DNA of 64,000 nucleotides from NCBI GenBank assembly GCA_965240325.2, contig OZ251236.1, forward strand, positions 1,364,001-1,428,000, read 5' to 3'. Below the pieces are notes generated by a model, which saw only the letters and a program-made list of their open reading frames with translations, did no database searches and was not told the origin of the DNA. The position numbers and the translations under genes are program-made. This DNA is from Rebecca billardiae RCC1528 (Eukaryota > Protista > Haptophyta). Every line of letters starts with the position of its first letter. Position 1 is the stretch's first letter. This document shows, piece after piece, positions 13,296 to 60,663 of the stretch.

Positions 13296-13552
13296 AGAGT
13301 GCGGTCCGCTCGCGGTCCGCCGTCCGCGGCCTAGCTGGCTAGCACACACACGTGGCACAGCCGAGACAATATGCAGCATATATAGTAGTACAGCCTGACA
13401 GTCACAGTGTTAGTGGGCCAAGCTGGCCTTTAAGCCGCGAGATTGAAGATGGAGCAGGCGAGATTGGCAGATTGCAGCCGCGCGCAACGCCGCCTCAGTT
13501 TTCCGCGCGTGCATCATCATCGGCGGGGCGAGGGAGGCCTCGGATCGCGACG

Positions 13553-15315: not shown

Positions 15316-15969
15316 ATCTGATGGCTTTTTGAAACTACAGTTTAATGGATACTGTATACCTTAATACCTGGTGCCACGTGCACTCGGCAATGCCCGAGGT
15401 CGTGGCGGTCGCTGACGAGCCTGACGACGACAGACGAGCCACGAGTTGACTCGCTGAGAGACACTAGCTCCGAGCTACCGGGCTGTCCGGGCCAGAGTTT
15501 TTTTTAAAAAGGATATACGAACTATCGGCGTTCTGGACCGTTACCATACATGACCTGTGACAAGAATAGCATCATCACGTTTCATCGTTTTACCCACCAC
15601 CCATTCAGACGAATCTGAACAGTGAACGATGAGGACTGAGGAGGGGCTACCGTATGCGCTATTAATAGAACGGCTCTGAGATTGATAGTGTTGAGTATCT
15701 CACCATATCTGTGGCTTGGAACGTCGCGGCGAAACCCCACAAACCGCGATCATATTGACGAACGAAGCGCCGTTATTACGGGTAACTTTGCTAATTGGCG
15801 TCGGAGATGGGCCGTGGGCACTCATGGGCGCGCGGGCGTGGGCCCAACCGGCACGGGGTACCCGCACCCGAGCGAGAGCGAGAGCGGGAGCGTCGTGTTC
15901 TCATCTGCGGGGGCCGCCGCGGCCGCCCGACGGAGAGGGTCACCCCACCGCGCCTACGCGCCGGGTGCG

Positions 15970-18900
15970 ATGTGGCTACTCGTGGTGTTTGCCGCGGCAT
16001 TGAGCGCCGCGCAGCTGGGTGGGCATGCCTCCGTCTCGGATGATGGCTCGAGAGTCGCACTCCACGCGACTGAGATGTCGGAGACCTCGCCTCGACAGTC
16101 GCACGCGCCGGCGGCGCGCAAAGTGCCGCAACATGCTGCCGAGACACTGAGCGTCGCCGCGTTCAGCTTCGCGGCTGCAGTGCCCTCTGTCGTGCCCGAC
16201 GCCCCGAAAGACATCCCAGCGAAAGACGTCCCACCGCTGCCAACCCTCAACTTTGCGTCCTCCGCCGTTGTCGGTGCCCCTGCCGAAGCCTTCAGCTTCG
16301 CGCCGCTGAGTGGTCCGGTGCTGAGTATGGCCCCTGGGCCCGTGCCCGTGGTCTCGTCGCCAGCGCATCTGCAGACGACGCCGCCCTCGCCGCAGCCGCC
16401 GCCGCCCTCGCCGCCGCCGCCCTCGCCGCCGCCGCCCTCGCCGAGTGTTCTATCTGTGCTGCAGGCCATCTCTGCGCCCTCCAGCCTCGCGCCGCTGAGT
16501 GGCCCTGCGCTGAGTATGGCCCCTGGGCCCGTGCCCGTGGTCTCGTCGCCAGCGCATCTGCAGCCGCCGCCGCCCTCGCCGCCGCCGCCCTCGCCGCCGC
16601 CGCCCTCGCCGCCGCCGCCCTCGCCGCCCGACACGTCTGTGCCGCCGATCACCTCTGCGCCCGTGCCGGAGCTGATCTCCACAGTCGTCACCCAGCTGCC
16701 GTCCCCGCTGTCGCTGCAGGTGCTCTCCGCGCCCTTCTCGGCCGTCCTCTCCCGCATCGATGCCATGTCGCTGCCCGCCTCGCCGCCCCTGCCGCCGGGC
16801 CCAGGCCCCGGAGAGCCGCCGTTGCCGACCCTGTCCCTCCCGGTCTCCTCGCTGCCCGGCCTGAGCCTGCCGTCCCGGCCCTTGCCCTCGGTCCAGCCGC
16901 CGCCGCCGCCCTCGCCGCTGCCGCTTGCGCTGCAGCCGCCGCCCTCGCCGCCCTCGCCACCGCCGCCCTCGCCGAGTGTTCTGTCTGTGCTGCAGGCCAT
17001 CTCTGCGCCCTCCAGCCTCGCGCCGCTGAGTGGCCCTGCGCTGAGTGTGGCCCGTGGGCCCGTGCCCGTGGTCTCGTCGCCAGCGCAGCTGCAGCCGCCG
17101 CTCTCGCCGCAGCCGCCGCCGCCCTCACCGCCGCCGCCCTCGCCGCCGCCGCTGCTGCTCTCGCCGCAGCCGCCGCCGCCCTCGCCGCCGCCGCCCTCGC
17201 CGCCGCCGCTGCCGCTCTCGCCGCAGCCGCCGCCGCCCTCGCCGCCGCCGCCCTCGCCGCCGCCGCTGCAGCTTGCGCTGCAGCCGCCGCCCTCGCCGCC
17301 CTCGCCGCTCGCTCTGCAGCCGCCGCCCTCGCCGCCCGACACGTCTGTGCCGCCGATCACCTCTGCGCCCGTGCCGGAGCTGCTCTCCACAGTCGTCACC
17401 CAGCTGCCGTCCCCGCTGTCGCTGCAGGTGCTCTCCGCGCCCTTCTCGGCCGTCCTCTCCCGCATCGATGCCATGTCGCTGCCCGCCTCGCCGCCCCTGC
17501 CGCCGGGCCCAGGCCCCGGAGAGCCGCCGTTGCCGACCCTGTCCCTCCCAGTCTCCTCGCTGCCCGGCCTGAGCCTGCCGTCCCGGCCCTTGCCCTCGGT
17601 GCAGTCGCCGCCGCCGCCCTCGCCGCCGCCAGCACCCTCGCAGCCGCCGCCCTCGCCGGCGCAGCCGCCGCCCTCGCCGCCGCCCGCGCCGCAGCCCTCG
17701 CCGCCGCCTCTGCCGCCGCCCGTGTCGCCGCCCTCGCCGCCTCTACCCCCCTCGCCGCCCCCCGGCCCGCTCGGCGGCGCGTTTGCGCGCGTGTACCTCA
17801 CCGCTGCCTCGCCCGGCGCGCTCGTGCACGACTCGGAGGCGTCGGCGTCCAACCGTCACGCCGCCGACTTTGGCTTCTTCCAGCTGGGCGGGGACGAGGC
17901 GGGCGCGCAGGGCGCGCTGGGCGGCGTGCTCGAGGGCTTTGAGGGCGACGACGCGCTGCTCGACCCGGACGGCACCGACGCCTTCGCCCTGTCCAAGCGG
18001 AAGGCGGGCACGGCGCGCGCGTGGGTGCGCACACCCACCGTGTACGCGGACCGCTCGGACGTGCGCGCCACGTACCAGCTGCACGACGCGGCGGGCCGCA
18101 CGGCCGTGGAGCTCTCCGGGCTCAGCGTGTCGCTCACGCTCGCCAACGCCGCCGGCGAGACCGAGCTCACGTCGTGCGCCGCGCCCGACGCGGTCAGCGG
18201 CGTGGGCGAGTGCTCGGGCACGGCTCCGGCCGCGTGGTTCGGGTCGTCGGAGGCGGCGGGCGTCGACGTGACGGTGGCCGTGTCCTACTCGGGCGCGGAG
18301 GTGGCGAGCGTCGAGCTGAGCGGCGCGATCAGCCTCGCGCCCGCGCCCTCGTTCCCCGAGCTGAGCGCCGCGGGCGTGCGCGTCTCCTTCGCCACCTCGC
18401 CCCGCTTCCCCGGCGACGAGGTCGTGGCGAGCGTGTACGCGCACACGGGCGGGTTCCCGCTGAACGCGTACCATCTGAGCGTCGCCTTCAACGCGAGCGT
18501 GCTCGAGCTGGTGTCGGTGGTGGGCGCGGCGGAGTTCAGCGCGCCGGTGACCCTGGAGGGCGAGGGCACGGTCGGCGTGATCTCGGCGGGCGTGCAGGCG
18601 GCCACCACCGAGGCGCAGGTGACGGGCGACGCCGTGCCGCTGTGCACGCTCACGTTCGAGCTGCCCGCGGGCGCGCCGGCCGGCGTCGCGTCGGGCGCGC
18701 TGTCCGTCGTGGTCGAGCAGCTCGTCAACTGGATCAACAACCCGTTCGTGCAGGGCGCGGACGCGCGCGTCGACGACGAGCGCGGCGCGCCGGCGGGCAC
18801 GAGCGGCCAGCTCACCGTCGAGCACGCCGCCGTGCTCGCCATCGCGGCGTTCGTCGCGGACACGGGCAACGCCGTGCGCGTGAACACGGCGCCGCTCACC

Positions 18901-21900
18901 GGCTCGGCCGACGCCGCGAGCGTCGACGCGGTCGTCCTCACCTCGCGCGCGGCGGACGCGCCCGCCGCGGCGAGCGCGAGCGCGTCGTACGAGCTGTCGT
19001 GCGCGCTCGCCAGCGCCGCCGACGGCGCGGCCCTCGCGGTGAGCAGCGGCTGCGCGCTCTCGGCGGGCGCGACGCAGACGAGCGGCACGAGCGGCGCGGC
19101 GGTGCGCGCGCAGCTGGCAGGCGGCGGCTCGGCGCTCGAGGACACCCTCGACGTGCGCGTGTGGTACCCGCGCGACGTGCGAGTCGAGCTCGGCGCGCCG
19201 ACGCTCAGCGCGATCAGCGGGCTGCTCCGCCGCGCGTCGGGCGTCGCGTGCGAGACCGCCGACCCCGCCTCCGCGCAGTCCGCGTACCGCCGCTCGCGCG
19301 TGCGCGTGCTCGCCTCCTTCTCCCTCGACGCCTCCAGCGGCTTTGGCGGCGCGGGCACGACCGCCGCGCTGCTCGGCCTGGAGGCGCAGGGCGGCGTGCT
19401 CGACGTCACGAGGCACGTGAGCGTAGGCAGCTCGGACGCGACGGTCGCCGTCGTCGTGCAGGACAGCGTGAGCGGCGCCGCGTACGTCGAGGCGGTGCCC
19501 GGCGCGCCGAGCGGCGCGCGCGCCAACATCACGCTCGCCTCCGCGCCGGACGCGGGCCTCGCGCCGCCCGCCACCGTCACGCTCGACGCCGACGCGCCGC
19601 TGGGCGTGGACGCGCTCACCGTCCTCGCGTTCACCGGCGCGGCGTGGAGCACCGGCCCGCCCGCCACCACGCCGCGCGCCGGCCCGTTCAGCGCGGCGTT
19701 CAGCCTCGAGCAGCTGCTGAGCGCGGAGGGCGACGAGGCGCGCGTCGTCGCGTGGGCGGCGCTGAGCGACGGCACCGTCGAGCGCGTGCCCCACGCCGAG
19801 CTGCGGCTGAACACGACGACGAGCTCGCTCGAGGTGGCGCGCGGCGCGGGCACGGACGACGCGTGGCGGGCCACCGTCGCGCTCAATGCCGTCTCGCAGG
19901 AGGGCGAGCTGCTGCCCGCCGAGTGGCGCGCGTGCGCCGAGGCGGCGGTCGGCTCGGGCGCGGCGCTCGTGAGCCTCGCGCTGCCCGCGCCCACGGCCGT
20001 GCGGCTGAGCGCCACCGCCACGCGGCTCGCCGACGCGTCGGACGGCGCGTCGCAGCCGCCCGTCAGCCTGCCGAGCAGCGCGACCCTCACCGCGCTCGTC
20101 GACTTTGAGGACGGCAGCTCGATCGACTACTCGGCCGACTCGCGGCTCACGCTCGAGCTGAGCGCCGGGAGCGCGTGCGCGACGCTCAGCGCGCAGACGC
20201 TCGGCATCGCCGCCGGCGCCGCGGCCGACACGGCGTGCGTGGGCACCGGCGCGGTCGCGGTGACGGCCACGCTGGGCGCGTTCAGCCTGCAGGCCACGCT
20301 CTCGCTCGACGTGGTCGCCCTCTCCTCCGTCGAGATCACGCGCACCAACTACCCGACGGACTCGTCGACGGCGTCGGTGACTGCGCTGAGCACGCTCGCG
20401 CTGGTCGGCTGCACCGGCCACTACCAGCGCGCGCAGCTCGGCGCCGTCGCGACGCTGAGCGACGGCAGCAGCGCGGACGTGACCGCGCAGGCCAGCTTCA
20501 CCTCGAGCGACACCGCCGTCGCCGCCGTCGCCGCCTCCGGCTCCGCCGTGCTGCTCGTGCCCGCCGCGGCGGGCACCACCGAGCTCGTCGGCGCGTGGGA
20601 GGGCTTGGCCTCGGCGGCGGCGGCCGTCAGCGTGACCGACACGCCCGTGCAGCCCAGCGCACTCGCGCTCAGCTCGGGCGGGCTGACGAGCTTCGACCTG
20701 GGCAGCGTCGCGGGGAGCTCGGCCGCGACGCTCGCCGCGCGCGTCGAGTTTGACGACGGCTCGGCGTGGCCGGACGCGCTGCTGCTCTCGGCGTGGATGG
20801 CGCCGGCGTCGCTCCTCACGCTCAGCTCGGCGGACTCGGCCGCGGTTGGCGTCGGCGCGGACGGCACGCTCACGCTGCTCGACAACGCCGCCGAGCGCGT
20901 GGAGGTGTCGGCGTCGTGGGCGTGCGCGCCGGCGCAGGTGGCCGCGTCGACGGTGAGCGTCGCGCCCAACCTCGAGCCGAGCGCGCGCGACGTCGACCTC
21001 GGCGCGTCGAGCGGCCTGCAGTTCCAGCCCGACAGCGGCGCGGGCACGCTCGAGGTCTCAGTGCGCGTGCACACGGCCGGCGAGGCGCTCGTCAACTTCC
21101 AGATCGAGATCTCGCTGGACGACAGCCGGCTGCGCGCGAGCGCGTGCGCGGTGCAGCTCTCGTGGGCGGCGTGCACGATCAACGACCCGACCTCACGCGT
21201 GCTTCTCATCGGCGACAACACGCAGGCCACCGACTCGGGCAGCAGCCTGCCCATCGCCACCATCACGTTTGACATCCTCGCCGAGGGCAGCGCGCCCTTC
21301 GAGGCCACGGTCGTCGAGCTCGTCACCGTCTCCTCCGCGGGCGCGGAGACGCGCACGACGGACGCGGAGGTGGTCGCGGGCGCGGGCAGCGCGCTGCTGC
21401 CCGCGCCGCCCGCGCGCCGCCGGCTGCGCGCCGACGGCGCCGCCGTCGTGCCGGCGGCGAGCGCGCGCCGCGCGCCGCTCGGCCGGCCGCGCCGCGGCCT
21501 GCAGAGCTGCGACGCGTGCGCCGCGCAGGTGTACGGCGACGTGTCGGGCGACTGCACCTTCACCTCGTACGACGTGCGCATCGCTTCGCTCGTGATCCTC
21601 GGCTCGGCAGAGTACCCGCTCGAAGACTTGTGCGAGTGGCGCGCGTCGCAGCTCGACCCGAGCCTCGACGGCTCGGTGAGCGCCGTCGATGCGGCCTACC
21701 TGCTGCTCGCGCTCGGCGGCAAGCGCCGCTTTGTGGCGGCGAGCGCGCTCTCGCCCGCGGGCACGCTGTACGGGGCGTCGGTCGGGGCGGAGTGCAGCCT
21801 GAGCGTCACGCTCGTCGACGACAGCTCGACGCCGGTCGACGGCTCGCAGACCTCCGTGCGCGCCGAGGTGTCGTACGCCGCGATCGCCTCGCTCGTCGAC

Positions 21901-24900
21901 GACAGCGGCGGCGTGCGCGAGAGCGTGCTCAACAGCACGGGCGCTGTCGAGCCGGCGCTCTCGCCCGAGGGCAACTGGCTCTTCGAGCTCGAGCCGCTCG
22001 GCGGCGGCGTGTTCGAGCTCGGCTTCCGGCCCAACACGCCGAGCGGCGCGTGGCCGCAGGCGGGCGAGCTGCGCGTCGCGTTCATGGTCGAGACGACCGA
22101 CGCGCTCGGCGGCACGGAGGACGCGCGCGCCGCGCCCTTCCTCGGCTCGTCTGCTGATCCGTACGGCGCCGGCGGCTTCTCCTTCTCGCCGATACTGAGC
22201 GTGGACGTCTCGCTGGGCGCGGTGCCGCCGCCGAGCGCGCCGCCGCCGCCGCCGCCGCCGAGCGCGCCGCCGCCGCCGCCGCCGCCGAGCGTGCCGCCGC
22301 CGCCGCCGCCGAGCGTGCCGCCGCCGCCGCCGCCGAGCATGCCGCCGCCGCCGCCGCCGAGCGTGCCGCCGCCGCCGCCGCCGAGCGTGCCGCCGCCGCC
22401 GCCGCCGAGCGTGCCGCCGCCGCCGCCGCCGAGCGTGCCGCCGCCGCCGCCGCCGAGCGTGCCGCCGCCGCCGCCGCCGAGCGTGCCGCCGCCGCCGCCG
22501 CCGAGCGTGCCGCCGCCGCCGCCGCCGAGCGTGCCGCCGCCGCCGCCGCCGCCGCCGAGCGTGCCGCCTCCGCCTCCGCCGAGCGTGCCGCCTCCGCCGC
22601 CGCCGAGCGTGCCGCCGCCGCCGCCGCCGAGCGTGCCGCCGCCGCCGCCGCCGAGCGTGCCGCCGCCGCCGCCGCCGAGCGTGCCGCCGCCGCCGCCGAG
22701 CGTGCCGCCGCCGCCGCCGCCGAGCGTGCCGCCGCCGCCGCCGCCGAGCGTGCCTCCGCCGCCGCCGCCGAGCGTGCCGCCGCCGCCGCCGCCGAGCGTG
22801 CCTCCGCCGCCGCCGCCGAGCGTGCCGCCGCCGCCGCCGCCGAGCGTGCCGCCGCCGCCGCCGCCGAGCGTGCCGCCGCCGCCGCCGCCGAGCGTGCCTC
22901 CGCCGCCGCCGCCGAGCGTGCCGCCGCCGCCGCCGCCGAGCGTGCCGCCGCCGCCGCCGCCGAGCGTGCCGCCGCCGCCGCCGCCGAGCGTGCCGCCGCC
23001 GCCGCCGCCGAGCGTGCCGCCGCCGCCGCCGCCGAGCGTGCCGCCGCCGCCGCCGCCGCCGCCGAGCGTGCCGCCGTCGCCGCCGCCGAGCGTGCCTCCG
23101 CCGCCGCCGCCGAGCGTGCCTCCGCCGCCGCCGCCGAGCGTGCCGCCGCCGCCGCCGCCGAGCGTGCCGCCGCCGCCGCCGCCGAGCGTGCCGCCACCGC
23201 CGCCGCCGAGCGTGCCGCCGCCGCCGCCGCCGAGCGTGCCTCCGCCGCCGCCGCCGAGCGTGCCGCCGCCGCCGCCGCCGAGCGTGCCGCCGCCACCGCC
23301 GCCGAGCGTGCCGCCGCCGCCATTGGAGCCGCGGCCTCCGCCCTCGCCGCCGCCCCCGCCGCCGCCACCAGGACCGCCACCGGCGCCGCCACCGCCGCCG
23401 CAGCCGCCACCGCCTCCGCCGAGCCCGCCGCCGAGCCCGCCACCAAGACCGCCGCCGCCGCCGCCGCCTGCGCCGCCCCCAAGCCCGCCACCGCCGCCGC
23501 GAACGCAGCCGTTCCCGCCGCCGAGCTCACCGCGCCCGCCTCCCAGCCCGCCGCCACCGCCACCGCCAGCCCCACCCCCGAGCCCGCCGCCCAGCCCGCC
23601 GCCGCCGCCGCCGCTGCCGCCACCGAGCCTGCCGCCGCCGCCGCCGCCGACTCCACCGCCGAACCTACCACCGCCGCCAAGCTTGCCGCCAAGCCTGCCG
23701 CCGCCGCCGCCCTCTCCGCCGCCCTCCCCGCCGCCGAGCCCGCCCCCGCCGCCGTCGCTGCCACCAAGCCCACCGCCGAGCCCGCCACCGAGCCCGCCGC
23801 CACCGAGCCCGCCGCCGCCGCCCACACCTCCGCCGAGCCCACCACCACCGCCGCGCACCGAGCCGTTCCCTCCGCCGAGCCCGCCGAGCCCGCCGCCGAG
23901 CCCGCCGCCGTCGCCTCCGCCGCTGCCGCCGCCGAGCCCGCCGCCGAGCCCGCCGCCGAGCCCGCCGCCGAGCCCGCCGCCGAGCCCGCCGCCGCCGAGC
24001 CCGCCGCCGCCTTCGCCGCCACCCACGCCGCCGCCCTTGCCGCCACCCTCGCCGCCGCCGCCCTCGCCGCCGCCCTCGCCGCCACCGCCCCCACCGCCCA
24101 GCCCGCCGCCCAGCCCGCCGCCACCCTCCCCGCCACCGAGCCCGCCGCCGACCCCGCCGCCCAGCCCGCCGCCCTCGCCGCCGCCGCCCAGCCCGCCGCC
24201 ACCGCCGCCGCCCTCGCCGCCGCCGCCCAGCCCTCCGCCGCCCAGCCCGCCGCCCCCGCTGCGCGAGAACGCCACCACCTTCACCGCGGTCGTGGCCGTG
24301 CCGCAGCAGCTCGCGCTCGGCCCGGAGTGGTGGCTGCCGGACGGCTCGCGGCTCAAGTGGCTGCCCGCCGCGGAGGGCGGCGGCGGCGTGAACTGCTCCG
24401 CGCCCGCGCTCGACGCGTACGGCGCCGAGCAGACGCTCGTCGGCGGCAACGCCACGTTCACCTTCGCCGAGCCCGCGTGGGCGCTGCGCTTCTGCTACTT
24501 CGCGCCCGTCGGCAGCGGCAGCCCGGGCGCGGGCGCGTGGACGGAGGAGCCCACGTACTACCTGGATGCGCAGGAGGTGCTGGGCAGCTCTCGCGCGTTC
24601 GTGGTCGAGGGCGTGCTCTCGCGCGTCACCTTCTCGGGCATCGGCGTCAAGACGGGCGACGCCGCCAAGTTCGTGGCCGCGGCGGACGCCGCCTCGCTCG
24701 GCTGCGCGGACGCGCCCGCCGCGCACGACGGCGGCGCCGCGCTCTCGCTCGTCGGCTCGCGCGTACAGCCGACGTTCCCCGAGCGCACGACGGGGCTGGT
24801 TTTGTGCTACCGCTTCCGCACGCACGCGTACAAGCTGTACGCCGCGATCACGCTCGACGTGTACGGCCTCGGCGGCGCGCCCACCGCGTTCACGTTCGTC

Positions 24901-27900
24901 GCAGGCGTGGCCGAGGCCGTGTCGCTCAGCGGCGAGGGGCTGGCCGCGGGCGACGTGATCAAGTGGGTGCCGGCGGGCGCGAGCAGCTGCGCGCTCACGG
25001 AGGATGCTGCCCTGGGCGGGCTCATCACGCTGCCCACCGCCGGACAGAGCCCCGCCTTCGCCATCGGCTCGGGCGCGCTCGGCCTGCAGCTGTGCTTCAA
25101 GTTTGGCGGCCGGCCGTTCAAACTCTACCCGACGCACACGCTGGACGTGCTGCAACTCACCGGGCCGGTCGCGACGCTCGGCGTGGTGGGTGTGGCCGAG
25201 CGCGTGACGTTCAGCGGCGTCGGGCTCGCGCCCGGCGACCGCGCCTTCTGGCTGCTGCCCGGCGCGGCCACCGCCGCCGCGTGCGCCGAGGACGGCCCCA
25301 GCAGCGCGCGCGCCTCGGCGGTGTCCACCGTGGACGCGCAGCTGGCGGCCAACTTCAGCGTGCCCGCCGCGGGTCTCGGGCACGCGGTGTGTTACGCGCA
25401 CGGCGCCGAGCCGTTCGCGCTGTACGGCGGCATCGCGCTCGACGTGCACGAGGTCTCGTCGCCCGCGGCCTCGCGCGCCGTCGTCGGGCTGCCCGCCGCG
25501 GTCGCCTTTGGCGGCGTGGGCGTGTCGCTCGAAGGCTCCGCCTTCTTCTGGGCGGAGGGCGCGGCCGCCTGCCTCGCGGGCGCGGCCGTCGCGGCGTACG
25601 GCGGCGAGCGCAACATGAGCGGCAGCGTGGGCGCGTTCGAGCTGCTCGCGCCGCCGCCCACCTCCGCGCCGCTCGGGCTGTGCTACCGCTTCGGCCCGTC
25701 CGAGCCGTGGGCGCACTTCCCCGCCGTCTCGCTCGAGCCGCTGCACGTGAGCGCGCCCGCGCTCTCTGCGGTCGTGGTGGGCGTGCCGGAGACGCTGAGC
25801 TTCGAGGGGTACGGGCTGGGCGAGGGCGACACGGCCAAGTGGCTCAGCCCGGGCGCGAGCGACTGCTCGGCCACGCCCGCCGGCTTCGGCGGCGAGCAGG
25901 CCGTCTCGGCGGCCGGCACCGCCACCTTTGACTTCAGCGCCGCCGGCCTCGGCCTCGAGCTCTGTTTCACGTTTGCGGGCGCGCCGCCGCGGCTGTACAG
26001 CGCGGGCTCGGGCGCGGCGCGGCTGCTCGACGCGCACGCGGTGCAGGGCCCCGCGGCCACGGTCGCCGTCGTTGGCGTGGCGGAGGCCGTCCTCTTCACC
26101 GGCGTGGGCATCGGCGAGGGCGACGCCGCGTACTGGGTGCCCGCCGGCACGGCATCGTGCGCCGACGCGCCGCCCTCGTCCGCGTACGGCGGCGCGCAGA
26201 ACGTGAGCGCGGCCGGCGGCGCGAGCTTCACGTTCACGCAGACGACCGCGTCCGAGCCGGACGGGCTCGTGCTGTGCTATGCCTTCGCGGGCGAGCCGTA
26301 CGCGCTCTTCGCCGCCGTCGCGCTCCACGCGTACGACGTGGACGGCCCTGCGTTCACGCGCGCCGTCGTCGGCGTCGCCGAGACGGTGGCCTTCTCCGGG
26401 CACGGCGTGAGCGCGGCCGACTCGGCCAAGTGGGTGCTGGGCAGCGCGACGGACTGCTCCACGACCAACAGGCGGTACGGCGGCGTGCGCACCGTCGACG
26501 CCGCCTCGAGCGTCTCCGTGAGCTTCAGCGCCACCGGCCTTGGCCTGCGGCTGTGTTACGCGTTTGCGGGCGAGCCGTACAAGCTGTACGCGGCCCTCAC
26601 GCTCGACGCGGTGCAGGCGCAGACGCCCGCGTCCACGCTCGCGGTGGTGGGCGTGGCCGAGCCGGTGACGTTCGGCGGGGTCGGGCTGAGCGCGGGCGAC
26701 CAGGCCTTCTGGGCCGCGTTCAACAACACGGCGATCGACTGCGCGGCCGAGCTCAGCGCGGCCGACACGCTGTCGGGCGCGTACGGTGGCGTGCAGACGC
26801 TCGACGGCTCGCTCGGCGCGACGTTCACGTTTGGCGCGGCGCACGCGGACCTGCGGTTGTGCTTCAAGCACGCGGACGAGCCGTACACGTACCGCGCCGG
26901 GCTGCGCCTCGTCGCGGCCGAGGTGCAGGGCCCGGCGTCCACGGTCGCGGTCGCGGGCGTCGCCGAGCCGTTCAGCGTGCAGGGCGTGGGCGTGAGCGCG
27001 GCCGATGCGGGCTACTGGGTGCGCGCCGCGGCGGACTGCCCGGCGGGCGGAGGCGGCGAGCTCGCCGAGCTCGGCGGCGCGTTCGCCGTCGGCGCGGCGG
27101 GCGGCGCCTCCTTCACGCCGACCGTCGCCGCCTTCGGCCTCAGCCTGTGCTACCGCTTCGCCGCGGAGGCGTGGGCGCACTACGCGGACGTGACGCTCGA
27201 CGTGTTCGCTCTCTACTCGTACACGGGCGGTACGCGCGCGGTCGTGGGCAGCGCCAAGGCGGTGACGTTTGTGGGCGACGGCGTGAGCAGCGACGACCGC
27301 GCGTACTGGGCGCCCGCGGGCACCGCCTCGTGCGCGCTGCAGCCGCCGCTCGTGCAGTGGGGCGGCAGCAAGGCGGTGAGCGCGGCCGCGCGCGCGTCGT
27401 TCACATTCCTGCCCGGCACGGGCGCCCTCGGGTACGTTCTTTGCTACCGGTTCGGCGCGGAGCCATACACGCTGTACGCCAACCTGACGCTGGACGTGCT
27501 GCAGATCTCCGGCCCGTTCGTCGTGCTCGCCGTCGTCACCGTCGAGGAGTCGATCACCTTCCAGGGCGTCGGCCTCGGCGAGGGCGACGAGGCGTACTTT
27601 GTGCCGAGGGGCGCGGGCGCGGCCGGCTGCGCCGAGGCCAACCGGATCTCGGGCGACGCGAACGCGCTGATCAGCGGCGGCGTGGGCGCGTTCACGTTCC
27701 CCGCGGTCGCGACGGGCCACCGCCTGTGCTACCGCTTCGGCCCCGCGTCCGAGGGCCTGCCCTGGCGCCAGTTCGCCTCGATCACCCTCTCGGTCACGCT
27801 GCCGGACGACCCGTTCGCGCTCGCCGCCTTCAGCGCCCTCACGCCCACCGGCGCGCCGATCGGGAGCGGGTTTGGGTCGACGAGCGTCACCGTGGTCGGC

Positions 27901-30900
27901 TCCGGCTTCGACCTGGGCGCGCAGACCAAGGCTGGCATCATCTACTGCATCTTCTCCGACGGCGCGTCCGAGGCGCGCGTGCTGGTGGACACGATCACGC
28001 CCACGCAGATCAACTGCACCGCGCCCGCGCTCGACGCCGAGGCGCTGCGCTCGCTCTCGCTCGTCGCGGACGAGACGGACTCGAGCGGCGACCCGCGCGA
28101 GCCCGTCGCGATCACCAACGAGTTCGCCTACTTCGACATGGGCGCGGTGAGCGTCACCGAGCTGATGCCGCCGGGCGCGCCGCAGGGCACGCAGGACGCG
28201 CTGCTCGCGGTGCGCGGCACCAACTTCACAGACTACGGCGGCCTCACCTGCGCCTTCATCGGGCCAAACTTTGGCGGCGGGCGCGTGGAGGTGGCGGCGA
28301 CGCTGCCGGACGCGGGCAGCGCCGAGGTGCTCTGCACCGCGCCGTACGTCTCGCCGCTCGTCACGCCGGGCGACATCGCGGTCGAGCTCTCGCTCAACGG
28401 CCAGGCGTTCACCGACGACGGCGCGCAGTTCACGCTGTACACGGCGCTCGTCTCCGCGGCCGAGCCGAGCGGCGCGCCCGTCGGCGGCGCCGACCCCGCA
28501 GTCACGCTGTACGGCTCGGGCTTCCTCGAGCTCGGCGCGACGCGCTGCTACTACACCTCCGCGGCCGGCGCCGTCGTCGAGTCCGCCGGCGAGGTGCTCG
28601 ACGCCTCGACGGCGACGTGCGACTCGCCCTCGGGCGCGAGCGCAGACGCGTACACCGTCTCGCTCTCGCTCAACGGCGGCGTCAACCTCGTGCCCGTGCT
28701 CTTCGACGAGATCGGCTTCGAGCTGTACGACATGGCGGACGTGGCGGTGACCAAGCTCGTGCCGCCCGGCGGGCCGGTCGCGGGCGGCACGCGCGTCACC
28801 GTCTTCGGCGCGGGCTTCGACGAGTACGGGGACGCGTCGAGCGACAGCAGCCGCCGGCTGTGCTGCGTGCTCGACGGCGCGGGCGCGTGCACGGCGCACG
28901 CGACGCTGCTCGCCGACGCGGCGGACGGCTCGTCGCGCGCGCTGTGCACGGTGCCGCCGGCGCGGCTCGCGGGCAACGTGACGCTCGACATCTCGCTCAA
29001 CAACGGCACGCTCGCCTCCACCACGGACTCGGCCGTGCGCTTCGTGTACCACGACGAGCCGACGCTGCTGAGCGTCAGCCCGGCCGTCGGCGACGCGATC
29101 GGCGGCACGACCGTCACGCTCACGGGCTCGGGCTTCGCCGCGCTCGCCGAGGCGGCCGTGGGGTACGGCGCGGACCCGGCCTCGTTCCTGCGCGTGCGCT
29201 TCGGGCCGACGACCGCCGCGGCGCCGCTCTCGTTCAACGACACGCACATCGTGCAGCTGTCGAGCTGGGGCGCGGAGGGCGGCGCGGCGGTGCGCGTGAG
29301 CCTCAACGGGCGCCAGTTCGCGCCCACCGACGCGGCGGCCGCGCCGACGTTCAGCTTCCAGGGGCTGCACGCGCCCGAGGTCTCCGAGGCCCTCTTCACC
29401 GACGAGGGCACCGCGCTCAAGGTCGTGCTCGACGGGCAGGACACGAACCGCGGCGGCATGGTCGGGCTGGGCGGCTGCTCCGCCGTGCTCGACGACGCGA
29501 GCGTGTCGCTCATCCAGGGCGCCGCGAGCGCCGAGCCGCTCTGCTTCTGGCAGGACAGCTCGACGATCGTCGCGCAGCTCAACTCGCTCACGGCGCTGCG
29601 GCCGGGCGACACCGTCTCGCTCCGAGCCGACGTGATCACGCCGCTGCTGTACACGGGCGCGTGCCCCGGCACGCGCGGGCTGTGCGCGTCGGGCTCGGCC
29701 GAGATCGACGCCGACTTCCCGTGCGCCTCGTGCCCCACGCCCGTCGCGGACATCTCCGGCCCGAGCCAGATCTCGCAGTGCCCGAACGAGGTGCTGCGCC
29801 TCGACGGCACCGCGTCGTCCGGCGGCGGCGCCGTGCCGCTCACGTACACGTGGCGCGTCGACCCGAGCCGCTCCGACTTTGCGGACGCGATCAACGCGCA
29901 GCTCGCGACGCAGACCGGCCCGGTGGTCGAGCTCAGCGCGCTGCAGGGCGACAGCTACGTCTTCCTGCTGCGCGTCTCGTCCTTCCTCGGGCGGCGCTCG
30001 GCGCTGGTCGAGTGGCCCGTCTCGCGCGGCGGCGGCGCGTCGCCCGCGCTCGCCATCGACGGCCCGAGCGTGCAGCTCGCGCGCCCGTCGGAGGAGCTGC
30101 TGCTGCAGGGCGTCGCGACGCTCGCCGACTGCTGGCCCGTGGCGCAGGACGCCGACGTCGTCTTCTCGTGGAGCTACCTCGGCTCGAGCGTGAGCGCGAG
30201 CGGCGCGGCCGCGGGGCTCGCGCTGCCGCTCGACGAGCCGGACAAGTCCGGGCTGCTCATCCCCGCGTTCACGCTGCTCTCGGGCTACTCGTACGAGCTG
30301 CAGCTCGACGCGTACATGCTGGCCGAGCCGAGCGCGGCGACGAGCGCGAGCGTGACGGTGTCCGTCGAGGCGCAGGAGCTGCAGATCATCATCGCGGGCA
30401 GCGACCGGCAGACCTCGGCGGACGCGGCCGTCTCGATCGACGCGTCCAACTCGTTCGACCCCAACGTGCCCACGCTGGAGGGCAAGAGCGGCCTGAGCTT
30501 CGCGTGGGCGGTGGCGCTGAGCGCGAACGGCACGGCGGGCGAGGCGGTAGCGTTCGACGCCGCGCTCGGCGTCGACCTGACGACGAGCGTGCTCGCGCTG
30601 CCCGCGAGCGCGCTGCCCGCGGGCGAGTACGTCGTGACGCTCACCCTCTCGAAGCCGGGCATCGCCGCCGCGTCCTCCTCGCTCGAGCTGCAGGTGGTCG
30701 GGGCGTCGAACTTGCCGACGATCACCTTCGAGCCGCTCACCGCGCTCAAGTACAACCCGACGTGGGAGCTGCCGACCGAGCGCGTCACCGTCTCCGCTAG
30801 CGTGGGCGGCCAGGGCCAGAGGTCGTACGCGTGGCGCGCGTACGTGAACGTGGACGGGGTGCGCTCAGCGTCGGCGCTCGACCTCGCCGACACGGCGACG

Positions 30901-33900
30901 ACGACGACGGGCGCGGACAAGGCGAACCTCGCGTTCCGCAGCGGCGTGCTCACGCCGGGCGCGCAGTACACCTTTGAGCTCACCGCGAGCGTCGGCGGCG
31001 CGGACGCGGTCGGCAGCGTGGACGTGCTCATCAACAAGCCGCCGTTCGGCGGCTCGCTCAGCGTCGAGCCGGCGTCGGGCGGCAGCGCGCTCGAGACGGC
31101 GTTCTCGCTGCAGGCGCTCAGCTGGACCGACGACGCCTCCGACCTCCCGCTCGAGTACGCGTTCTCGTACACGTTCGCGGCGGACGGCGCGGGCGCGCTG
31201 CCCAAGGCGCTCTCCGCGACCGTGCGCTCGCCCACGCTGCTCGACGCGTACCTGCCCGAGGGCGCGCTCACGCTGCGCGTGCGCGTCTTCGACTTCTGGG
31301 GCTCGTCGGTCGACGCGACCGCGGGCGCGACGGTGCTCGCGCCCTCGTCCATCGACTGCGACGCGATCATCGCGCAGGCGCAGGGGCAGGTGGCGATTGG
31401 CAACGTGGCGCGCTCGATGCAGCTGCTCGCAGCGCTCGCGCAGGACGGCAGCTGCACCAACTCCGGCGCGCGCCGCCGCCGGCTGGGCGAGGCGGCGCGG
31501 CCCGTGCCGCGCGGCGCGCCGCGCCACGCGCGGCGCGCGCTGCAGGCGGCCAACGCCACCAACGGGACCGCGGCCAACTTCACGTGCGACGTGGCCGAGT
31601 CGGTGGTCGAGGAGATGCTGACGATCGTGGGCAGCGCGGGCAACGCCTCCGTCTCGACCGCCACCGGCCGGAAGCAGCTCGCCGGCGCGATCGCCGACAT
31701 CTTGCTCGGCACAAACTCGAGCGAGCTCACGCCGTGCGCGCAGCTCGAGGCGCTCTCGCTCGCGCTCTCGCTCATCCTCGACTCGACGAGCTCGGGGATG
31801 GACGAGAGCGCCGCCAGCGCGCTCTTCTCGTCGGTGCTCTCCGTGCTCGGCGCCAACGCGAGCGCGCTCGACCCGACCGTGCTGGGCGCGATCAACACGC
31901 TCGCGACCGACTCCGCGTCCGGCCTGGCCGCCTCGTTCCTCACGGGCAAGGTGGCGGGGGAGGAGTTCGACGAGATCACGGGGGACGGGCTGGCGCTCTC
32001 GGCCGGGCGCTCGTCCTCCGTCGCCAACTCGAGCATCGCCGCGCCCGGCGGCAGCGGCGGCATCGCCGTGCCGATCAGCGCGCTCGACGACGTGCAGAAC
32101 GCCTCGGTGGTGGACGTGGTGCAGTACCTGTTTGCGCGCAACACGAACGGCGACCCGACGGCGCAGCTCGGGCTGGGCGAGCTGCAGACGCCGGTGTACT
32201 CGATCACCTTCTCCTCGGCGTCCACGGGATCCGAGCTCTCCGTCGCCGGCCTCGACGAGCCCATCGTGATCGCGATCCCGCTCACCGCGTCGCACGAGCT
32301 GCAGTACGGCGCGTCGGGCGTGTGCGCAGAGTTCGACCGCTGCAACGGCCGCGGCGCGTGCGTGCTCGAGCCGCACAACGCGAGCGCGCTCGCCCTCGAC
32401 CCGAACGCGACGGCGCCCGGCGCGGCGTGCGTGTGCGACGCGCCGTGGTACGGCCCGAGCTGCCTCGAGCGCGCCGTGTGCCACTTCTGGGACGTGGCGG
32501 AGGGCGCGTGGTCGACCGACGGCTGCTCGACCGTGCCCACGCCGCCGGGCGGCGACAACACGACGCTGTACTGCGCGTGCACGCACCTCACCGAGTTCGG
32601 CGGCGTGAGCGTGCCCACCAGCCCCGCCGAGTTCCGCGAGGACGCGTCGGCGGTGAACGTGAACACGCTCTCCACCGACGACGCGACCGCCATCTTCACG
32701 ACGCCGCCCGATCAGCTGCTGGCGGAAAACCCGTCAATCTTCATCCTCGTGTTCACGCTGCTCGGCTGCACCGTGCTGTTCGTGATCCTCGGCTACGTCA
32801 AGGACGCGCACGACGACCGGGTGCGCGCGTCCAAGGTGGCGGCGGGCGAGGCGGCCGAGGAGGACAAGCCCGAGGCCGCGGAGGACAAGATGGAGCGGCG
32901 GCTCGACGAGCTCGACCGGCGCGTGCTCGAGGCGCGCGCCAAGGCGGCACGCGTGATCTCCTCGCGGGTGAAGGGCAAGGTGGTGCGCACGCAGACGGCC
33001 AAGGCGCGCGAGCTGGCCAAGGAGGACCCGGCGGCGGCGCGCCGCTCGATCCAGGAGATGGAGGCCGAGCGCGAGCAGCTCGCGCAGGAGCAGGCGCGCG
33101 CCGACAGCGCCAAGCCCAAGGACCACTACCTCACGCGCGCGATGCGCGCGATGCGCAGCGCGGTCGAGTCCGACCACACCGTGCTCGGCCTCTACTACGG
33201 CCACGACCGCGAGATCCGGCGGCCGCAGCTCGTGATGATCCTGATGACGCTGCTGATGCTCGAGGTGCTGATCGAGTGCATGCTCTTCACGCCCGACGAC
33301 CCCGCGGACGCGGGCAAGCCCGTCAACCTCGTCGTGATCGTCTTCAACGCCTTCATCTGCGCGGGCCTCGCCGCGCCCGCCATCGTCATCATGAAGCTGC
33401 TCTGGAACTGGGGCTACGAGAAGCCCGCGCCCATACTCCGGCGGCTCGGCCGGATCGCGACCAAGGCGACCGCGCCGGGCGCGAAGGCGAAGCGCAAGAA
33501 CATGATCCGCCGCTCCATGAACATGGGAGACCTGACCTCCCCGAGGCCGGGGACTGCGGGCAGCGGCCGCTCGACGGGCAGCGACGGAGCCGCCGCGAGC
33601 GCGGGCGTGCGGCTCGGCGCGCCCGCCGGCGCCGCCGCGCCTGACCGCGCCAAGCCGGCGCCGCCGCCACCGCCCTCGCCGCCGCGTCCCACGCCCCCTG
33701 GCCGATCGGGGCCGCGCTCGCCCTTCGCCCGCCCGCCGGCGCGCCTGCGGCCGGCGGCCGTCGCGCCGGTCAGCCCCGAGGTCGACGGCGACGACGACAT
33801 CGAGTCTGTGCGGCTGGCGGACTCGCCGCGGGGCACGCCGCCCGGCAGCCCGGCGGGCGGCAGCGGCGCGGGCTCGCCGGCGTCGCCCTCGGTGCGCGTC

Positions 33901-35497
33901 GTGCAGTCGACGCGGCGCAGGCCGTCGCTCGTGCGCGCCGGCGCCGGCGGCTCGCGCGGCAGCTCGCCGCGCGCCATGTCTGCGCAGCCGGCGCCAGACC
34001 CGCCGCGCGCGGGCGCGCAGGTGCGCTCGGCCTGGAGCTGTGCGGAGCCGTCCGCGAGCACGCGGCTCCACGTGCTGTCGCCGCCCGTGACGCTCCCCGG
34101 CTCGCCGCGCCCGCCGAGCACGCCGGGCGGCCCTGAGGACGACTCGGGCGAGGGCGCCTCCATGGCCGTGCAGTCCATCGGCGGAGGATCCAGATCCGCC
34201 TCTCCGCCGCCCGCGATTGGCGCGGACGCGTCCACGGTCGCGTCGCGCACGCCCGCGCCCGCACCCGGAGGCGCCCCGGGCACGCCCGACTGGCGGCGCG
34301 AGCGGAGCGACCGGGTGAACACGCCCGCCGGGTCGACGGGCGCGCCCGGGTCCGGCGGCTCCGAGCCATCCGCCCGCACGCCCAAGGGGACCGTGAGGCC
34401 GCCTCAGCGCCAGCCGCGGCCCTCGGCGGGGCGCGAGCCTCGGCCGTCGGGAGAGCGCGCGCCGCGCATCTCGCGCCCCTCCCGCACCTCCATGGTCGAC
34501 GACATCCCCGTCGAGCAGCGCGACAAGGTGGTGGCGGTCGCGATGGAGTCGCGCCGCCGCGCCGAGGCGGCCGAGGCGCGCGGCCTCTCCTCGTACATCG
34601 TCACCGAGCGCGAGCTGAACGATCTGTGGCGCGCCTTCTGCAAGTACGACAAGGACAAGTCTGGCACGCTCGCGGCGACCGAGCTGCGCAGCCTAATGGC
34701 GAGCCTCGGCATGCACCTCTCGCCCGAGCAGGCGGAGATGTGCGCGCCGCGCCGCGCGCCGCCGCGCCGCCTCGCCTCCGCCGCGCGCCGCGCCGCCGCG
34801 CACCTGCCTCCCGCCCGCCCGCCCGCCCACCCACCTCTCGCTGAGCCGTCCGCGCCCGGCCGCGCGCGCGCACGCGCAACCTGCGCGCAGGGTGCGCGGC
34901 CAGCTCGACCAGAGCAACTCGGGCGGCATCAACTTCGCCGAGCTGCTCGAGTGGTACACGGATCGCATGGGGGTGCGTGCGCGGCGCGCGGCGCGGCCGC
35001 GCTGAGCGCCTGCAGCACTGCGCGCGCGCACGGCGCCCCGAGCCCCGCCTCTCCGACTGACGCGCGCGCCGTCCGCGCCGCCCCCGCCCTGGGCGCAGGC
35101 GTTTGAGGAGGCGGAGGCGGAGCGGCGCGCCAAGCGCTCCAAGCTGCGCGTGATCTGGGAGGACAAGCTCAAGCTGCCGCGCATGGCCAAGATCGTGCTC
35201 GCGTGGCTCTCCTGCTGGACCCTCTTCGCCGTGTGCGCGTGGCTGTCGATCAGCTTCGCCATCGTGTTCGGGGAGGCGCGCTTCAACGCGCTCGTGCAGT
35301 CGTGGGGCATCGCGCTCTCGCAGACGTTTGTCGTCGAGGAGCCGTGCATCATCTGGATCTACCTCGCCATCCCTCTCATCCTTGACCGGCTCACGTCGAA
35401 CGACTTCACCGCTGAGCTCGTCAACGAATGCCTCTCCAGCGGCATCGGCTCCGCCATCGGCAAGTGCTTCAGCCTGTGCAAGGACTTGAGCGCGTGA
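15970..35497 (+). CDS. Giant (~6416 aa) polycystin-1-like/GPS surface receptor with TMEM132-like, cohesin, dockerin, extensin-like, IPT, REJ, EGF and EF-hand modules; join(15970..34739,34891..34972,35099..35497)
   Basis: Signal peptide MWLLVVFAAALSAA, an 18.8-kb open frame and GPS motif CHFWD..WSTDGC...CACTHLTEF. Two GT-AG introns restore a second EF-hand (LDQSNSGGINFAEL) and join the terminal 2-TM exon in frame. Confidence 0.9.
22225..24260 (+). repeat. Coding minisatellite: ~40+ copies of a 24-bp unit (SVPPPPPP), then SPPP-type repeats
   Basis: agcgtgccgccgccgccgccgccg tandem array 22288-23320, followed by an (SPPP)n/(SPPPP)n extensin-like tract. Confidence 0.95.
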
Positions 35498-35857: not shown

Positions 35858-37893
35858 TCAGGCTGCAAAGCTATCTGGGGTCTTGCCGACACCACCGGCC
35901 AGCGAGTGAACGGCGCGGGCGGCGTCAAGGGCGAGCTTGTCTGCGAGCTGCTGCGTCGCGGCCTCAGCGTAGATGCGCACGACGTCCTCCGTGCCCGATG
36001 GGCGGGCGAAGCAGCGCCCGCTCGGGGTTGCCGCCATCAGCCGCTCGAGCTCGGCCCGGAGTGCAGGCGGGGCGAGTACGCTCGCCTCGTCCTCGCTGCA
36101 GACGACCACCTGCGCCCGCACGCGCGCGCGCATGCCGTCGGATGTGACGGTGGCGCGAGGGCCGCGCGCAAAACTCCGGCCACGCGAGCCCACGCGCGCG
36201 TCGCGCGGGGCCGCGCGCGCCGCGCGCGCACCGTCCGGTCGGCAACCGGCAGCTTGGTCTGCCGCGAGGGCAGGTCCTCGTACAGCGCGTCCCACGCGCC
36301 CACGCCCCAGCGCAGCCGACGAAGCACGGCGTCCACGGCCAGCATGTCGCTGAGCGCGTCGCCCACGGCCTGCGCGGCGCGCGGCGCGGGGCGCGTCAGC
36401 GGCGGCGAGGGCTCGGCGCGCGGCCGCGCGGCCGTGTGCGCCCACAGCCACCGCGCACACACCTGGTTGATCAGCCTGTGCGCGGCGAGGAGCGTGCGCG
36501 CGGCGGCGGCGCGTGCCGACGCATCGCGGTCGGCGCTCGCGCCGCCCGCGCCCGCGGCGGCGACACGGGTGAGCCGCTCGAGCAGCCGCTCGGAGAAGAG
36601 CACCGTGCCATGGCCGTTCGCCTCAAAGTAGACGGCCAGGTCGAAGGCCAGCGCGCAGTGGTGCAGGAACTTGACCCCCGTCTTGGCCACGGCGATGTGC
36701 ACGCCCTGCGAGCGCAGGTACGCGCTCGATGCGCCGTTCGCGTACGCCGTCTGGACGACGGCCATCGTGGGCGCGTCGGCGTCGGCTGCGGGCGGCGTCG
36801 AGGTGCCGAGCAGCCCCGCGCGCGCCAGCTGCTCGCGCAGGAACGACGCGAGCAGCGCCGCCATCTTGTCCCCGTCCAGCAGCCGCCACTGCCCCGCCTC
36901 CCCGTACGTGTGGAAGACGACGCGGTCCGCGTCGCCGTCGAGCGAGCACGCGCGCCCGCCGGGCTCGAGCGCGGCCGCGGTGTCGAGGGAGCGCGGCGGC
37001 GTGCGCGACTTCTGGACGTGCTCCGCGCCGCACCCCGCGTTGAGCGCGCCCTCGCCGGGCCGGTTCACCACGATCAGCTCGGGCGCGGCGTCGCTGTGCC
37101 CGCCGCCGCCGCCGTGCGCGCCCTCACGCTCGTGCTCAGCGCCCAGGGCCTCGCGCAGCGCCTCGGCGAGCGGCGCAATCTTGAGCGCGCCCACGCCGCA
37201 CGCGCCGTCGACGTGCAGCGGCGTGGGCGGCGCGGCGGGCGACGAGGCGTCCGCGCGGAGCAGCTCCGCGTACGCGCCCGCGAGCATGCGGAAGTAGCCC
37301 GCTTCGCCACACCACTCTGGGCGGCCCCAGAAGCGCCCGGCTGCGGCCTCGCCGTTGGCCATGCGCACGGCGTGGTGGAGCTGCGGTGTGGTGAGCACGC
37401 CGAAGCTGGAGACCTGCGCGCCGCAGAGCTCCGCACCGCGCGACGCGAGAGCGGCGAGCCGCTCGCTGCTGGGCCGCGTGTCCCACGCGAGGAACACGCG
37501 CGGCGCCGGCTGCGCGCTCGCAGCCGCATCGGCGCTCCCGCCGATGCCCGCGAGCACAGTGGCGACCTGGTCGTCCGGTGCGTTGGCCAGCGCCTCGCAG
37601 TGCGCCTCCCAGCTCTGCGCGAGCATGCCCCCGTCCGGATCGACGAGCTTCACGCCATTGTCCGGCTCGGCATTGTGCGACGCGGTGACGACGAGGCCGA
37701 CTGCCAGCCCGAGCGTGCGCGAGCGCGCGGCCGCGAGCATGCCCATGCGCAGCAGCGTCGAGTCGAGCAGGGAGGCGCGCGTGCGGAAGCCGGCCACGCC
37801 ATAGCGCAGCTGCACGTCCTTCGGCCGCGGGAACGCGCGCGCCGCCGACGCCACGTCGACGACGCCGCTGAAGTCGAGGCCCTCCACAGCCAT
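35858..37893 (-). CDS. PGM3: Phosphoacetylglucosamine mutase; complement(join(35858..36109,36232..36369,36463..37893))
   Basis: YGVAGFR, TASHNAEPDNGVK, TTPQLHH, DGDADR, VQTAYANG, TGVKFLHH, YFEANGHGT, INQ|AVGDALSD and RPSGTEDVVRIYAEA. Two phase-0 GT-AG introns give 606 aa. Confidence 0.96.
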
Positions 37894-60654: not shown

Positions 60655-60663
60655 CAGGGCAGT

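Follow-up and report, generated by a model that had tools for sequence, protein, structure and literature searches.

Within the window, a 64,000-nucleotide stretch of DNA from the Pavlovales-type haptophyte Rebecca billardiae RCC1528 (Haptophyta), one gene on the + strand encodes a protein of 6,416 aa, from the ATG at 15970 to the stop at 35497 (Table 1). A frame scan found that the frame opens at 15640 and runs to a stop at 35106, with its first ATG at 15970; this ATG opens 18,770 nt of single frame, and two short GT–AG introns complete the coding sequence. The end at 35497 requires both introns (34740–34890 and 34973–35098), which are frame-consistent. From base composition, the probability of 6,256 stop-free codons is ~1e-30, and the other two + frames contain 100 and 14 stops. 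GC3 is 0.96–0.99 in globular segments on either side of the proline stalk. The giant frame contains no N, the only gap in the window being 200 N at 51379–51578. An in-frame intron candidate in the cohesin–dockerin linker (21448–21528) was rejected because it would delete the conserved second RR-x-L motif and a Cys pair; further in-frame introns may lie within the low-complexity cytosolic loop of exon 1. The original prediction of a single protein of ~6,400 aa agrees with this model of one frame plus two predicted introns, and each module that it listed was recovered near its predicted position. Searches with the spliced model were run exon by exon. Profile and fold searches supported the TIG, REJ, GPS, cohesin and dockerin assignments, whereas the TMEM132 domains taken alone fall below cut-off; Pfam matches to Pesticin, EAV_GS, MRP-S27 and Invasin_D3 were taken as noise.

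Table 1. Features of the giant gene and its predicted protein
Feature	Position	Strand	Basis or remark
Exon 1	15970–34739	+	18,770 nt, starting at first ATG
Probable signal peptide	15970–16020	+	short hydrophobic N-terminus, judged by eye
Pro/Ser-rich N-terminal block, recent internal duplication	16182–17770	+	sequence comparison
Cassette start	17800–18340	+	conserved in relatives; no Pfam match
First cohesin-like domain, TMEM132 position	18358–18813	+	hhalign
TMEM132-like Ig domains and additional conserved beta domains	18874–21000	+	conservation in relatives
TMEM132 4th/5th/6th-like Ig domains	18874–19836	+	Pfam, below cut-off
Second cohesin	21043–21400	+	predicted fold
Flexible linker, RR-x-L motifs at 21418 and 21490 on either side	21401–21510	+	
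Dockerin, two 12-residue Ca2+ loops (starts 21538, 21655)	21514–21735	+	profile, fold
Conserved post-dockerin beta domain	21736–22220	+	conservation, AF2 model
Proline stalk	22225–24260	+	678 aa, 75% Pro
12 repeats of ~98 aa with conserved Cys pair	24265–27804	+	divergent IPT/TIG-like beta sandwiches (predicted)
5 IPT/TIG domains	27823–29370	+	Pfam TIG
PKD-like domains and REJ module	29380–31360	+	Pfam REJ 30274–31356
Second linker, RR-x-L motifs at 31477 and 31531	31471–31542	+	overlooked in the original prediction
GAIN-like region, EGF-like insert 32335–32466, GPS 32476–32601	31543–32601	+	Pfam, conservation
TM1 (32737), charged cytosolic loop, TM2 (33229), TM3 (33334)	32737–33400	+	
Low-complexity Pro/Ser/Gly/Arg-rich cytosolic loop	33401–34620	+	
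EF-hand 1	34621–34710	+	Pfam EF-hand_6 1.4e-5, 24.9 bits vs cut-off 25
Intron 1, predicted	34740–34890	+	151 nt, GT–AG
Exon 2	34891–34972	+	encodes EF-hand 2
EF-hand 2	34891–34972	+	Pfam EF-hand_1 0.012
Intron 2, predicted	34973–35098	+	126 nt, GT–AG
Exon 3	35099–35497	+	TM4, TM5, short tail, TGA

The N-terminal block contains a duplication (16289–16974 versus 17009–17679) that is 85% identical, with 2 differences in 262 nt in one part. Behind it lies one conserved cassette, present in 753 relatives, the nearest from Diacronema lutheri, that unites the TMEM132-like domains and the second cohesin with the dockerin and another beta domain. The TMEM132 arrangement of a conserved region, a cohesin and then three Ig domains is present; the cassette start is probably, by its position alone, the TMEM132 region preceding the cohesin, and the first cohesin, overlooked before, aligns with the second in hhalign (98.4%, E = 1e-14). 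For the TMEM132-like region of the original prediction, the domain order, the cohesin in front and the relatives, which clear the Pfam cut-off for the 4th domain, speak in its favour, whereas its own scores for the 4th, 5th and 6th domains (5e-5, 0.018 and 0.023, in the correct order) are all below cut-off. The head modules had been said to occur normally in separate proteins; this is not supported, as TMEM132 has its own cohesin and coherins, lefftyrins and hedglings of choanoflagellates and sponges carry the full set in the same order (PMC6030884). The set was published as holozoan in origin, with a vertebrate cohesin that has no known partner and no detectable dockerin in vertebrate TMEM132 (PMC6030884). 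The giant protein lies outside Holozoa, the assigned place of origin, and shares the extended cassette with dockerin with cadherin-bearing relatives. Unlike coherins, lefftyrins and hedglings, it has no cadherin repeats (no match in its scanned pieces, while P0047 has them) and is joined to a REJ–GPS base. Unlike TMEM132, with its single TM and PP1/WIRS tail, it has ~3,900 more extracellular residues and five helices after the Ig domains.

The second cohesin, originally called at ~21040–21400, has no Pfam match, and its best 11 fold matches are all cohesins (Z 12.4–13.9). The dockerin, called at ~21530–21720, scores 0.034 in Pfam alone and 1.7e-8 when its family profile is compared with solved dockerins, with a fold match (Z 9.7) that covers all 62 residues at an rmsd of 1.7 Å, so that both calls are upheld. 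Among relatives, Asp at loop position 12 is invariant and position 1 is strongly conserved. The cohesin fold and the two-loop dockerin are like those of a cellulosomal pair. Unlike in cellulosomes, there are no enzymes and no scaffoldin array, and the two partners, whose binding is predicted, are neighbours in one chain with a probable processing linker between them. The cohesin–dockerin piece gave no matches in phages. An AF2 model of the cohesin, linker, dockerin and next domain has a pLDDT of 89 and a pTM of 0.88, with the 33-aa linker at pLDDT 56–67; we read the high pTM despite this linker as a predicted fixed mutual orientation of cohesin and dockerin. The modelled contact could be between the cohesin and the post-dockerin domain instead of the canonical cohesin–dockerin interface. 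No clear covariation between the two domains was found, mutual information being noise save for one Cys pair.

Among cohesin–dockerin linkers, 78 of 161 contain RR-x-L, against 9.7 when shuffled and 0.5 for windows taken upstream. Of 149 distinct linkers, 112 have a basic motif at each end, and the four Arg positions are 63–91% conserved. The 5,590-aa ectodomain contains four RR-x-L motifs (shuffled mean 0.49), all within the two pairs. Judged by sequence, these motifs appear to be of site-1-protease type, RRxL being the cleavage site of plant S1P/SBT6.1 (PMC13082318). In a 27-row clade that includes a cadherin-bearing coherin-like protein, the linker motifs are mostly furin-type, unlike here. 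The split between furin and RR-x-L types in essence reflects a single change on the tree and hence does not represent independent co-evolution.

The proline stalk, found where predicted (22225–24260), is built of ~41 Ser-Val-Pro6-type units followed by Ser-Pro3-5 extensin-like units, with 38 Ser-Pro3 motifs (extensin/HRGP-type), and would be about 210 nm long if polyproline II. The 12 repeats noted before as unassigned are present, with 93–104 aa each, 26–49% identity to a reference copy and two invariant Cys. A fold search with their predicted structure (pLDDT 94) returned IPT/TIG-containing proteins in 8 of the 9 best rows, with Z of only 6.9–8.0, which suggests that they may fold like divergent IPT/TIG domains. 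Sequence profiles did not connect them to the IPT domains of this protein, and no homologues were found by word search, metagenome scan, HMM on the relatives' proteins, PDB sequences or Foldseek; they match only unnamed Atlas clusters (features 0.95–0.96), with TM scores of 0.76–0.81 to clusters from Haptophyta, Euglenozoa and unassigned sources. The five predicted IPT/TIG domains are above the Pfam cut-off (TIG, 4e-30). Stalk and Ig domains together would make a head-bearing rod of about 0.3 µm.

At the membrane-proximal end, REJ (Pfam 3.7e-44, 151 bits) and GPS (4.5e-8; ADGRG3 GPS match, E = 0.006) are above cut-off, as foreseen, with the predicted GPS cut at His-Leu|Thr between 32589 and 32590 (Thr5541). 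The EGF-like insert scores 0.02 in Pfam. Outside GPS, the GAIN-like region has no Pfam or PDB matches and is conserved in the metagenome protein P0155 (E = 6e-10). The post-REJ RR-x-L motif also occurs in Cymbomonas and Mesostigma. The five hydrophobic helices of the original prediction are present before the stop; between TM3 and TM4 lies an EF-hand pair that it had overlooked, predicted to be cytosolic from the positive-inside pattern. No Pfam match was found for PLAT after TM1, where a charged helical-type loop lies, for PKD_channel or for a 7tm domain, the five helices being widely spaced. TM1–5 gave no PDB sequence matches to PKD1, and TM2–5 did not align to the P0155 contig; the helices share the 1+2+2 spacing of PKD1 and carry possibly PKD1-like motifs. 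The overall plan is that of PKD1, PKD1L, PKDREJ, sea-urchin REJ and Ectocarpus Esi0130_0068, with a signal peptide (probable here), a long Ig-like ectodomain that includes PKD-like domains and REJ, a GPS ahead of TM1 and several helices (PMC3321182, PMC4700764). Unlike this family, the giant protein has five helices rather than eleven, no PLAT and no TOP/channel domain, and it has a TMEM132–cohesin–dockerin head, a proline stalk, an IPT-like rod, an EGF-like insert, ~48 residues from GPS cut to TM1 and a cytosolic EF-hand pair.

Already known are the TMEM132–cohesin cassette in choanoflagellate and sponge cadherins and REJ–GPS receptors in algae, as in Ectocarpus (PMC4700764). No description of the combined architecture was found in the literature searched, as the original prediction had supposed. 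The fusion of cassette and REJ is nevertheless not unique: an N-terminal cassette, a spacer and then REJ also occur in database entries from Cymbomonas (CYMTET_51513, CYMTET_13313) and Mesostigma (Mv19333) and in P0155, which further shares the Pro stalk, GPS and a similar TM1, all in the same order. Unlike the giant protein, the green-algal relatives use filamin repeats and have apparently one helix and no His-Leu-Thr GPS, P0155 has neither an Ig rod nor RR-x-L motifs after REJ, and none of these has the 12 repeats. When the C-terminal half was used as query in a full-length search, IPT-rich proteins were the only matches.

We put at roughly 50% the probability that the protein is a long-reach surface tether or sensor whose pieces are held by a cohesin–dockerin clasp and GAIN/GPS; of the roles considered, adhesion or mechanosensing fits this giant surface protein best, and the flagellum, haptonema or scale layer that the original prediction gave as possible sites is conjectural. 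During secretion, a subtilase of site-1 type would cleave at the two RR-x-L motifs that separate cohesin from dockerin and so remove the spacer, the post-REJ pair would probably be cut by the same type of subtilase, and GPS autoproteolysis would free an 876-aa membrane piece. The TMEM132-like head, probably cut off in this way, is predicted to be held on the rod by the bacterial-type cohesin–dockerin pair in a strong, Ca2+-dependent and detachable bond, while the rod would stay on the membrane piece through GAIN. The presumably hydroxyproline-glycosylated stalk and Ig rod would raise the head by ~0.3 µm, and binding or pull would be relayed to the five-helix core. Since this core has no pore, it would have to act through a partner, e.g. 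a PKD2-type channel; the EF-hands may read cytosolic Ca2+. Adhesion GPCRs and Notch have pre-cut ectodomains that are non-covalently held and releasable by force, and the predicted arrangement is analogous. Unlike them, the giant protein has no 7TM domain and no NRR, and possibly has three cleavage points in series. More tentatively, a cleaved in-cis cohesin–dockerin pair may be a general detachable clasp in eukaryotes, whose spacer would be cut on either side by a convertase belonging to the lineage, a site-1-type enzyme in algae and a furin-type one in holozoans. Here, the clasp would hold the TMEM132-like head in a way that needs Ca2+ and withstands force; coupled in series with the GAIN/GPS of a polycystin base that has no channel, it would make the protein a two-fuse tether or mechanosensor. 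The TMEM132 ectodomain would then long predate Holozoa or have been widely transferred.

Several features would also suit a structural role as a coat or as a filament that is shed (a component of periplast, hair, scale or mucilage), in which the cuts and GPS serve maturation and release and the membrane piece acts chiefly as an anchor and signals little: the extensin-like stalk and 17 Ig-like spacers, the lack of a channel or catalytic domain, and the tandem cassettes of the very long proteins P0008 and P0010, which have no detected membrane helix. We consider this rather unlikely, since a plain anchor needs no five-helix core, long cytosolic loop or two EF-hand motifs, all of which are kept. 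It is less likely again that an exposed rod-tip dockerin and freed cohesin heads swap partners in trans, forming a cellulosome-like network or cell–cell bridges. Each cassette does have two cohesins and one dockerin, Prymnesium, Diacronema and others have multi-cassette proteins, and dockerin positions 10–11 vary strongly among relatives; however, cohesin and dockerin are adjacent in the cassette without exception, and their arrangement is fixed in the single-chain model.

The architecture could also be real and the clasp wrong, with the linker staying intact as a flexible hinge and both cohesin and dockerin serving as structural domains. The cohesin's expected docking face is not more conserved than the opposite face (p = 0.78, crude test), dockerin loop 1 has Ser and Thr in place of the relatives' Asn and Asp, and low-complexity loops rich in Arg are a common feature of GC-rich genomes. 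Such a hinge is improbable, given that the double motifs are position-specific, far exceed their frequency in shuffled sequence and change in type between clades. The ~43 near-identical 24-nt units of the stalk array (27 identical) and the recent N-terminal duplication would speak for a mis-join across the array or for two separate genes. This is hardly credible, because there is no gap, array unit lengths are all multiples of three, the stalk directly follows the dockerin with no second signal peptide or stop, and the head–stalk–REJ order recurs in independent assemblies, with cassette plus REJ in Cymbomonas, Mesostigma and P0155.

In summary, our data place the TMEM132 set, published as holozoan, in haptophytes and green algae with an adjoining dockerin, and the cohesin–dockerin linker is conserved as if for cutting. 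A 405-aa fragment offers a small, directly testable system for binding partners of eukaryotic cohesins. Finally, the REJ–GPS front half of polycystin-1 is used here without a channel to anchor large heads, which bears on the role of polycystin-1 before animals.

The giant receptor put forward in the original prediction is a real reading frame: a single + strand frame is open over 15640-35106, with its first ATG at 15970, and carries the domain calls described below. From base composition, the probability of 6,256 stop-free codons is near 1e-30; the other two + frames contain 100 and 14 stops, and GC3 is 0.96-0.99 in the globular segments either side of the stalk. The 3′ end requires two predicted introns, both frame-preserving, which divide an EF-hand pair, and the last exon downstream of them encodes two helices and ends with TGA at 35495-35497. 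With both introns removed the receptor is 6,416 aa long; its homology searches were run exon by exon. The N-terminal Pro block (16289-17679) contains a recent in-frame duplication of ~700 nt, one unique part of which differs at 2/262 nt.

In the head, the Pfam TMEM132 4th, 5th, and 6th domains are present in order, all below cut-off. As the domain at 18358-18813 matches that at 21043-21400 with 98.4% probability, the receptor has two cohesins. A structure model covering the second cohesin, the linker, the dockerin, and the next domain (94 input sequences, pLDDT 89) bore out the cohesin and dockerin calls: its first domain matches bacterial cohesin in the top 11 rows (Z 12.4-13.9), and its residues 173-239 match dockerin (Z 9.7, rmsd 1.7 Å, 62/62). 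The family profile matches solved dockerins at 1.7e-8. The head modules had been described as normally found in separate proteins. Residues 890-2085 have 753 relatives at E<=1e-3 with the same domain order, TMEM132 contains cohesin, and choanoflagellate and sponge cadherins share the TMEM132 domain set (PMC6030884); therefore, the supposedly separate TMEM132, cohesin, and dockerin modules are one cassette. Its closest match is Diacronema lutheri KAG8459670 (41% identity), followed by Prymnesium parvum and Pavlovales CCMP2436. In the cassette tree, the receptor's cassette is sister to a Diacronema cassette (SH-aLRT 98), in an enclosing clade (support 99) whose every named row is haptophyte. The gene probably comes from a Pavlovales-type haptophyte.

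The stalk as assembled has 678 aa, 75% of them Pro, and would extend ~210 nm if polyproline II; every unit-length variant keeps the frame. Repeat analysis confirmed the 12 repeats that follow. One of them was modelled as a beta sandwich (pLDDT 94), for which eight of the nine best fold matches are IPT/TIG-containing proteins at middling Z scores (6.9-8.0), and unnamed haptophyte and euglenozoan clusters match the fold with TM ~0.8. No sequence homologues were found by word search, metagenome scan, or among PDB sequences. Together with the five Pfam TIG domains, the repeats would form a rod of 17 Ig-like units, estimated at about 65-70 nm. By eye, the Diacronema protein (P0007) has a stretch at residues ~2950-3090 that looks like one such unit, which the repeat HMM did not detect.

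At the base, the predicted REJ and GPS are both firm in Pfam (4e-44 and 4.5e-8), with a predicted His-Leu|Thr cut at residue 5541. Outside the GPS, the putative GAIN region aligns with the metagenome protein P0155 at 6e-10 but gave no Pfam or PDB match to a GAIN fold. GAIN domains are known in Tetrahymena and Dictyostelium (PMC3321182), and Ectocarpus is known to have a REJ-GPS protein (PMC4700764). Five helices lie downstream of the GPS; the charge pattern predicts cytosolic TM1-2 and TM3-4 loops, the latter containing the EF-hand pair. Comparison with PDB sequences did not demonstrate PKD1 homology of the helices. Exon 3 resembles a mostly haptophyte unnamed cluster of 1,598 members (0.94), which is weak evidence.

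The putative clasp linker between cohesin and dockerin has ~33 residues of low model confidence; because the whole-model pTM is nonetheless 0.88, we read the flanking modelled domains as probably held in a fixed arrangement. Of 161 homologous linkers, 78 contain RR-x-L; the figure falls to 9.7 when the sequences are shuffled and to 0.5 for windows lying upstream. Basic motifs lie at both ends in 112/149 distinct linkers, and four Arg positions are 63-91% conserved. The plant site-1 protease SBT6.1 cuts at RRxL (PMC13082318). All four ectodomain RR-x-L motifs fall in two pairs, in the clasp linker and after the REJ. The latter site recurs in the REJ proteins of Cymbomonas and Mesostigma, where one motif occupies the corresponding position, and is absent from P0155. 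Furin-type motifs occur in 21 rows of a well-supported 27-row clade, whose only scanned member, P0047, has cadherin repeats; on the tree, the split from RR-x-L amounts to essentially a single switch, which is no proof of co-evolution. Neither docking-face conservation on the cohesin nor covariation supported cohesin-dockerin docking. Nine proteins of 5,000-6,200 aa (P0027, P0028, P0040, P0044, P0047 (L002), P0048, P0058, P0062, and P0074) have about three cassettes each, with furin-type double sites separating cohesin from dockerin. These probable holozoan coherins possibly share the clasp, which PMC6030884 does not mention in coherins.

From this anatomy, we infer the functional steps. Most likely, with a probability of about 0.5, the precursor would be cleaved at the paired RR-x-L motifs and the GPS, the head being suspended from the rod tip via cohesin-dockerin, ~0.3 micrometre up, and the rod attached to the membrane piece via GAIN. 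Force or Ca2+ loss could shed the head, and the pore-less core would signal via a partner and read cytosolic Ca2+. A structural coat is a distinctly less probable reading, a trans-acting network is unlikely, and an uncut hinge slightly more so. A mis-join across the Pro repeat is very improbable, because independent assemblies share the same cassette-to-REJ logic: Cymbomonas CYMTET_51513 (cassette, Pro/Thr stretch, filamin repeats, REJ-like region), Mesostigma Mv19333 (cassette, filamins, REJ at 1e-24), and P0155 (cassette, Pro stalk, REJ at 1e-30, GPS, TM1).

No operon-like link was found between the receptor and its immediate neighbours (DUF818-like hydrolase, PGM3, and mTERF); other neighbouring genes encode SHIPPO-repeat and Sel1-MYND proteins. 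A segment near 57827-58717 recurs inverted near 60020-60814.

Coordinates of the receptor introns, second linker, and surrounding features
Feature	Position	Strand	Remark
Sel1-repeat array fused to MYND finger	8422-10008	+	10 stretches, 108-nt units
DUF818-like hydrolase	13490-15315	+	upstream neighbour
Second linker	31471-31542		RR-x-L motif at either end; REJ upstream, GAIN-like helices downstream
Predicted intron 1	34740-34890	+	GT-AG
Predicted intron 2	34973-35098	+	GT-AG
PGM3	36037-37890	-	downstream neighbour
mTERF	37943-39394	+	downstream neighbour
879-aa ORF	41591-44230	-	nuclease-like in appearance, SAP-like tail
889-aa ORF	47435-50104	-	hydrophobic segments, no Pfam match
Tandem array	50419-50748		64 nt, 5 copies, non-coding
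Scaffold gap	51379-51578		exactly 200 N, outside receptor gene
Tandem array	60908-63515		about 200-214 nt units, non-coding

By analogy, the receptor may work like polycystin-1 or a cleaved receptor of the adhesion-GPCR type. It is not a member of PKD1 proper, since its base has neither PLAT nor channel domain, nor of TMEM132 proper, whose adjacent single helix it lacks, nor of the coherins, as it has no cadherins. A literature search that took in few subscription journals found no paper describing this architecture, nor any reporting the cassette from algae. The TMEM132 domain set has been assigned a holozoan origin (PMC6030884); the novelty here is that the cassette occurs in algae.
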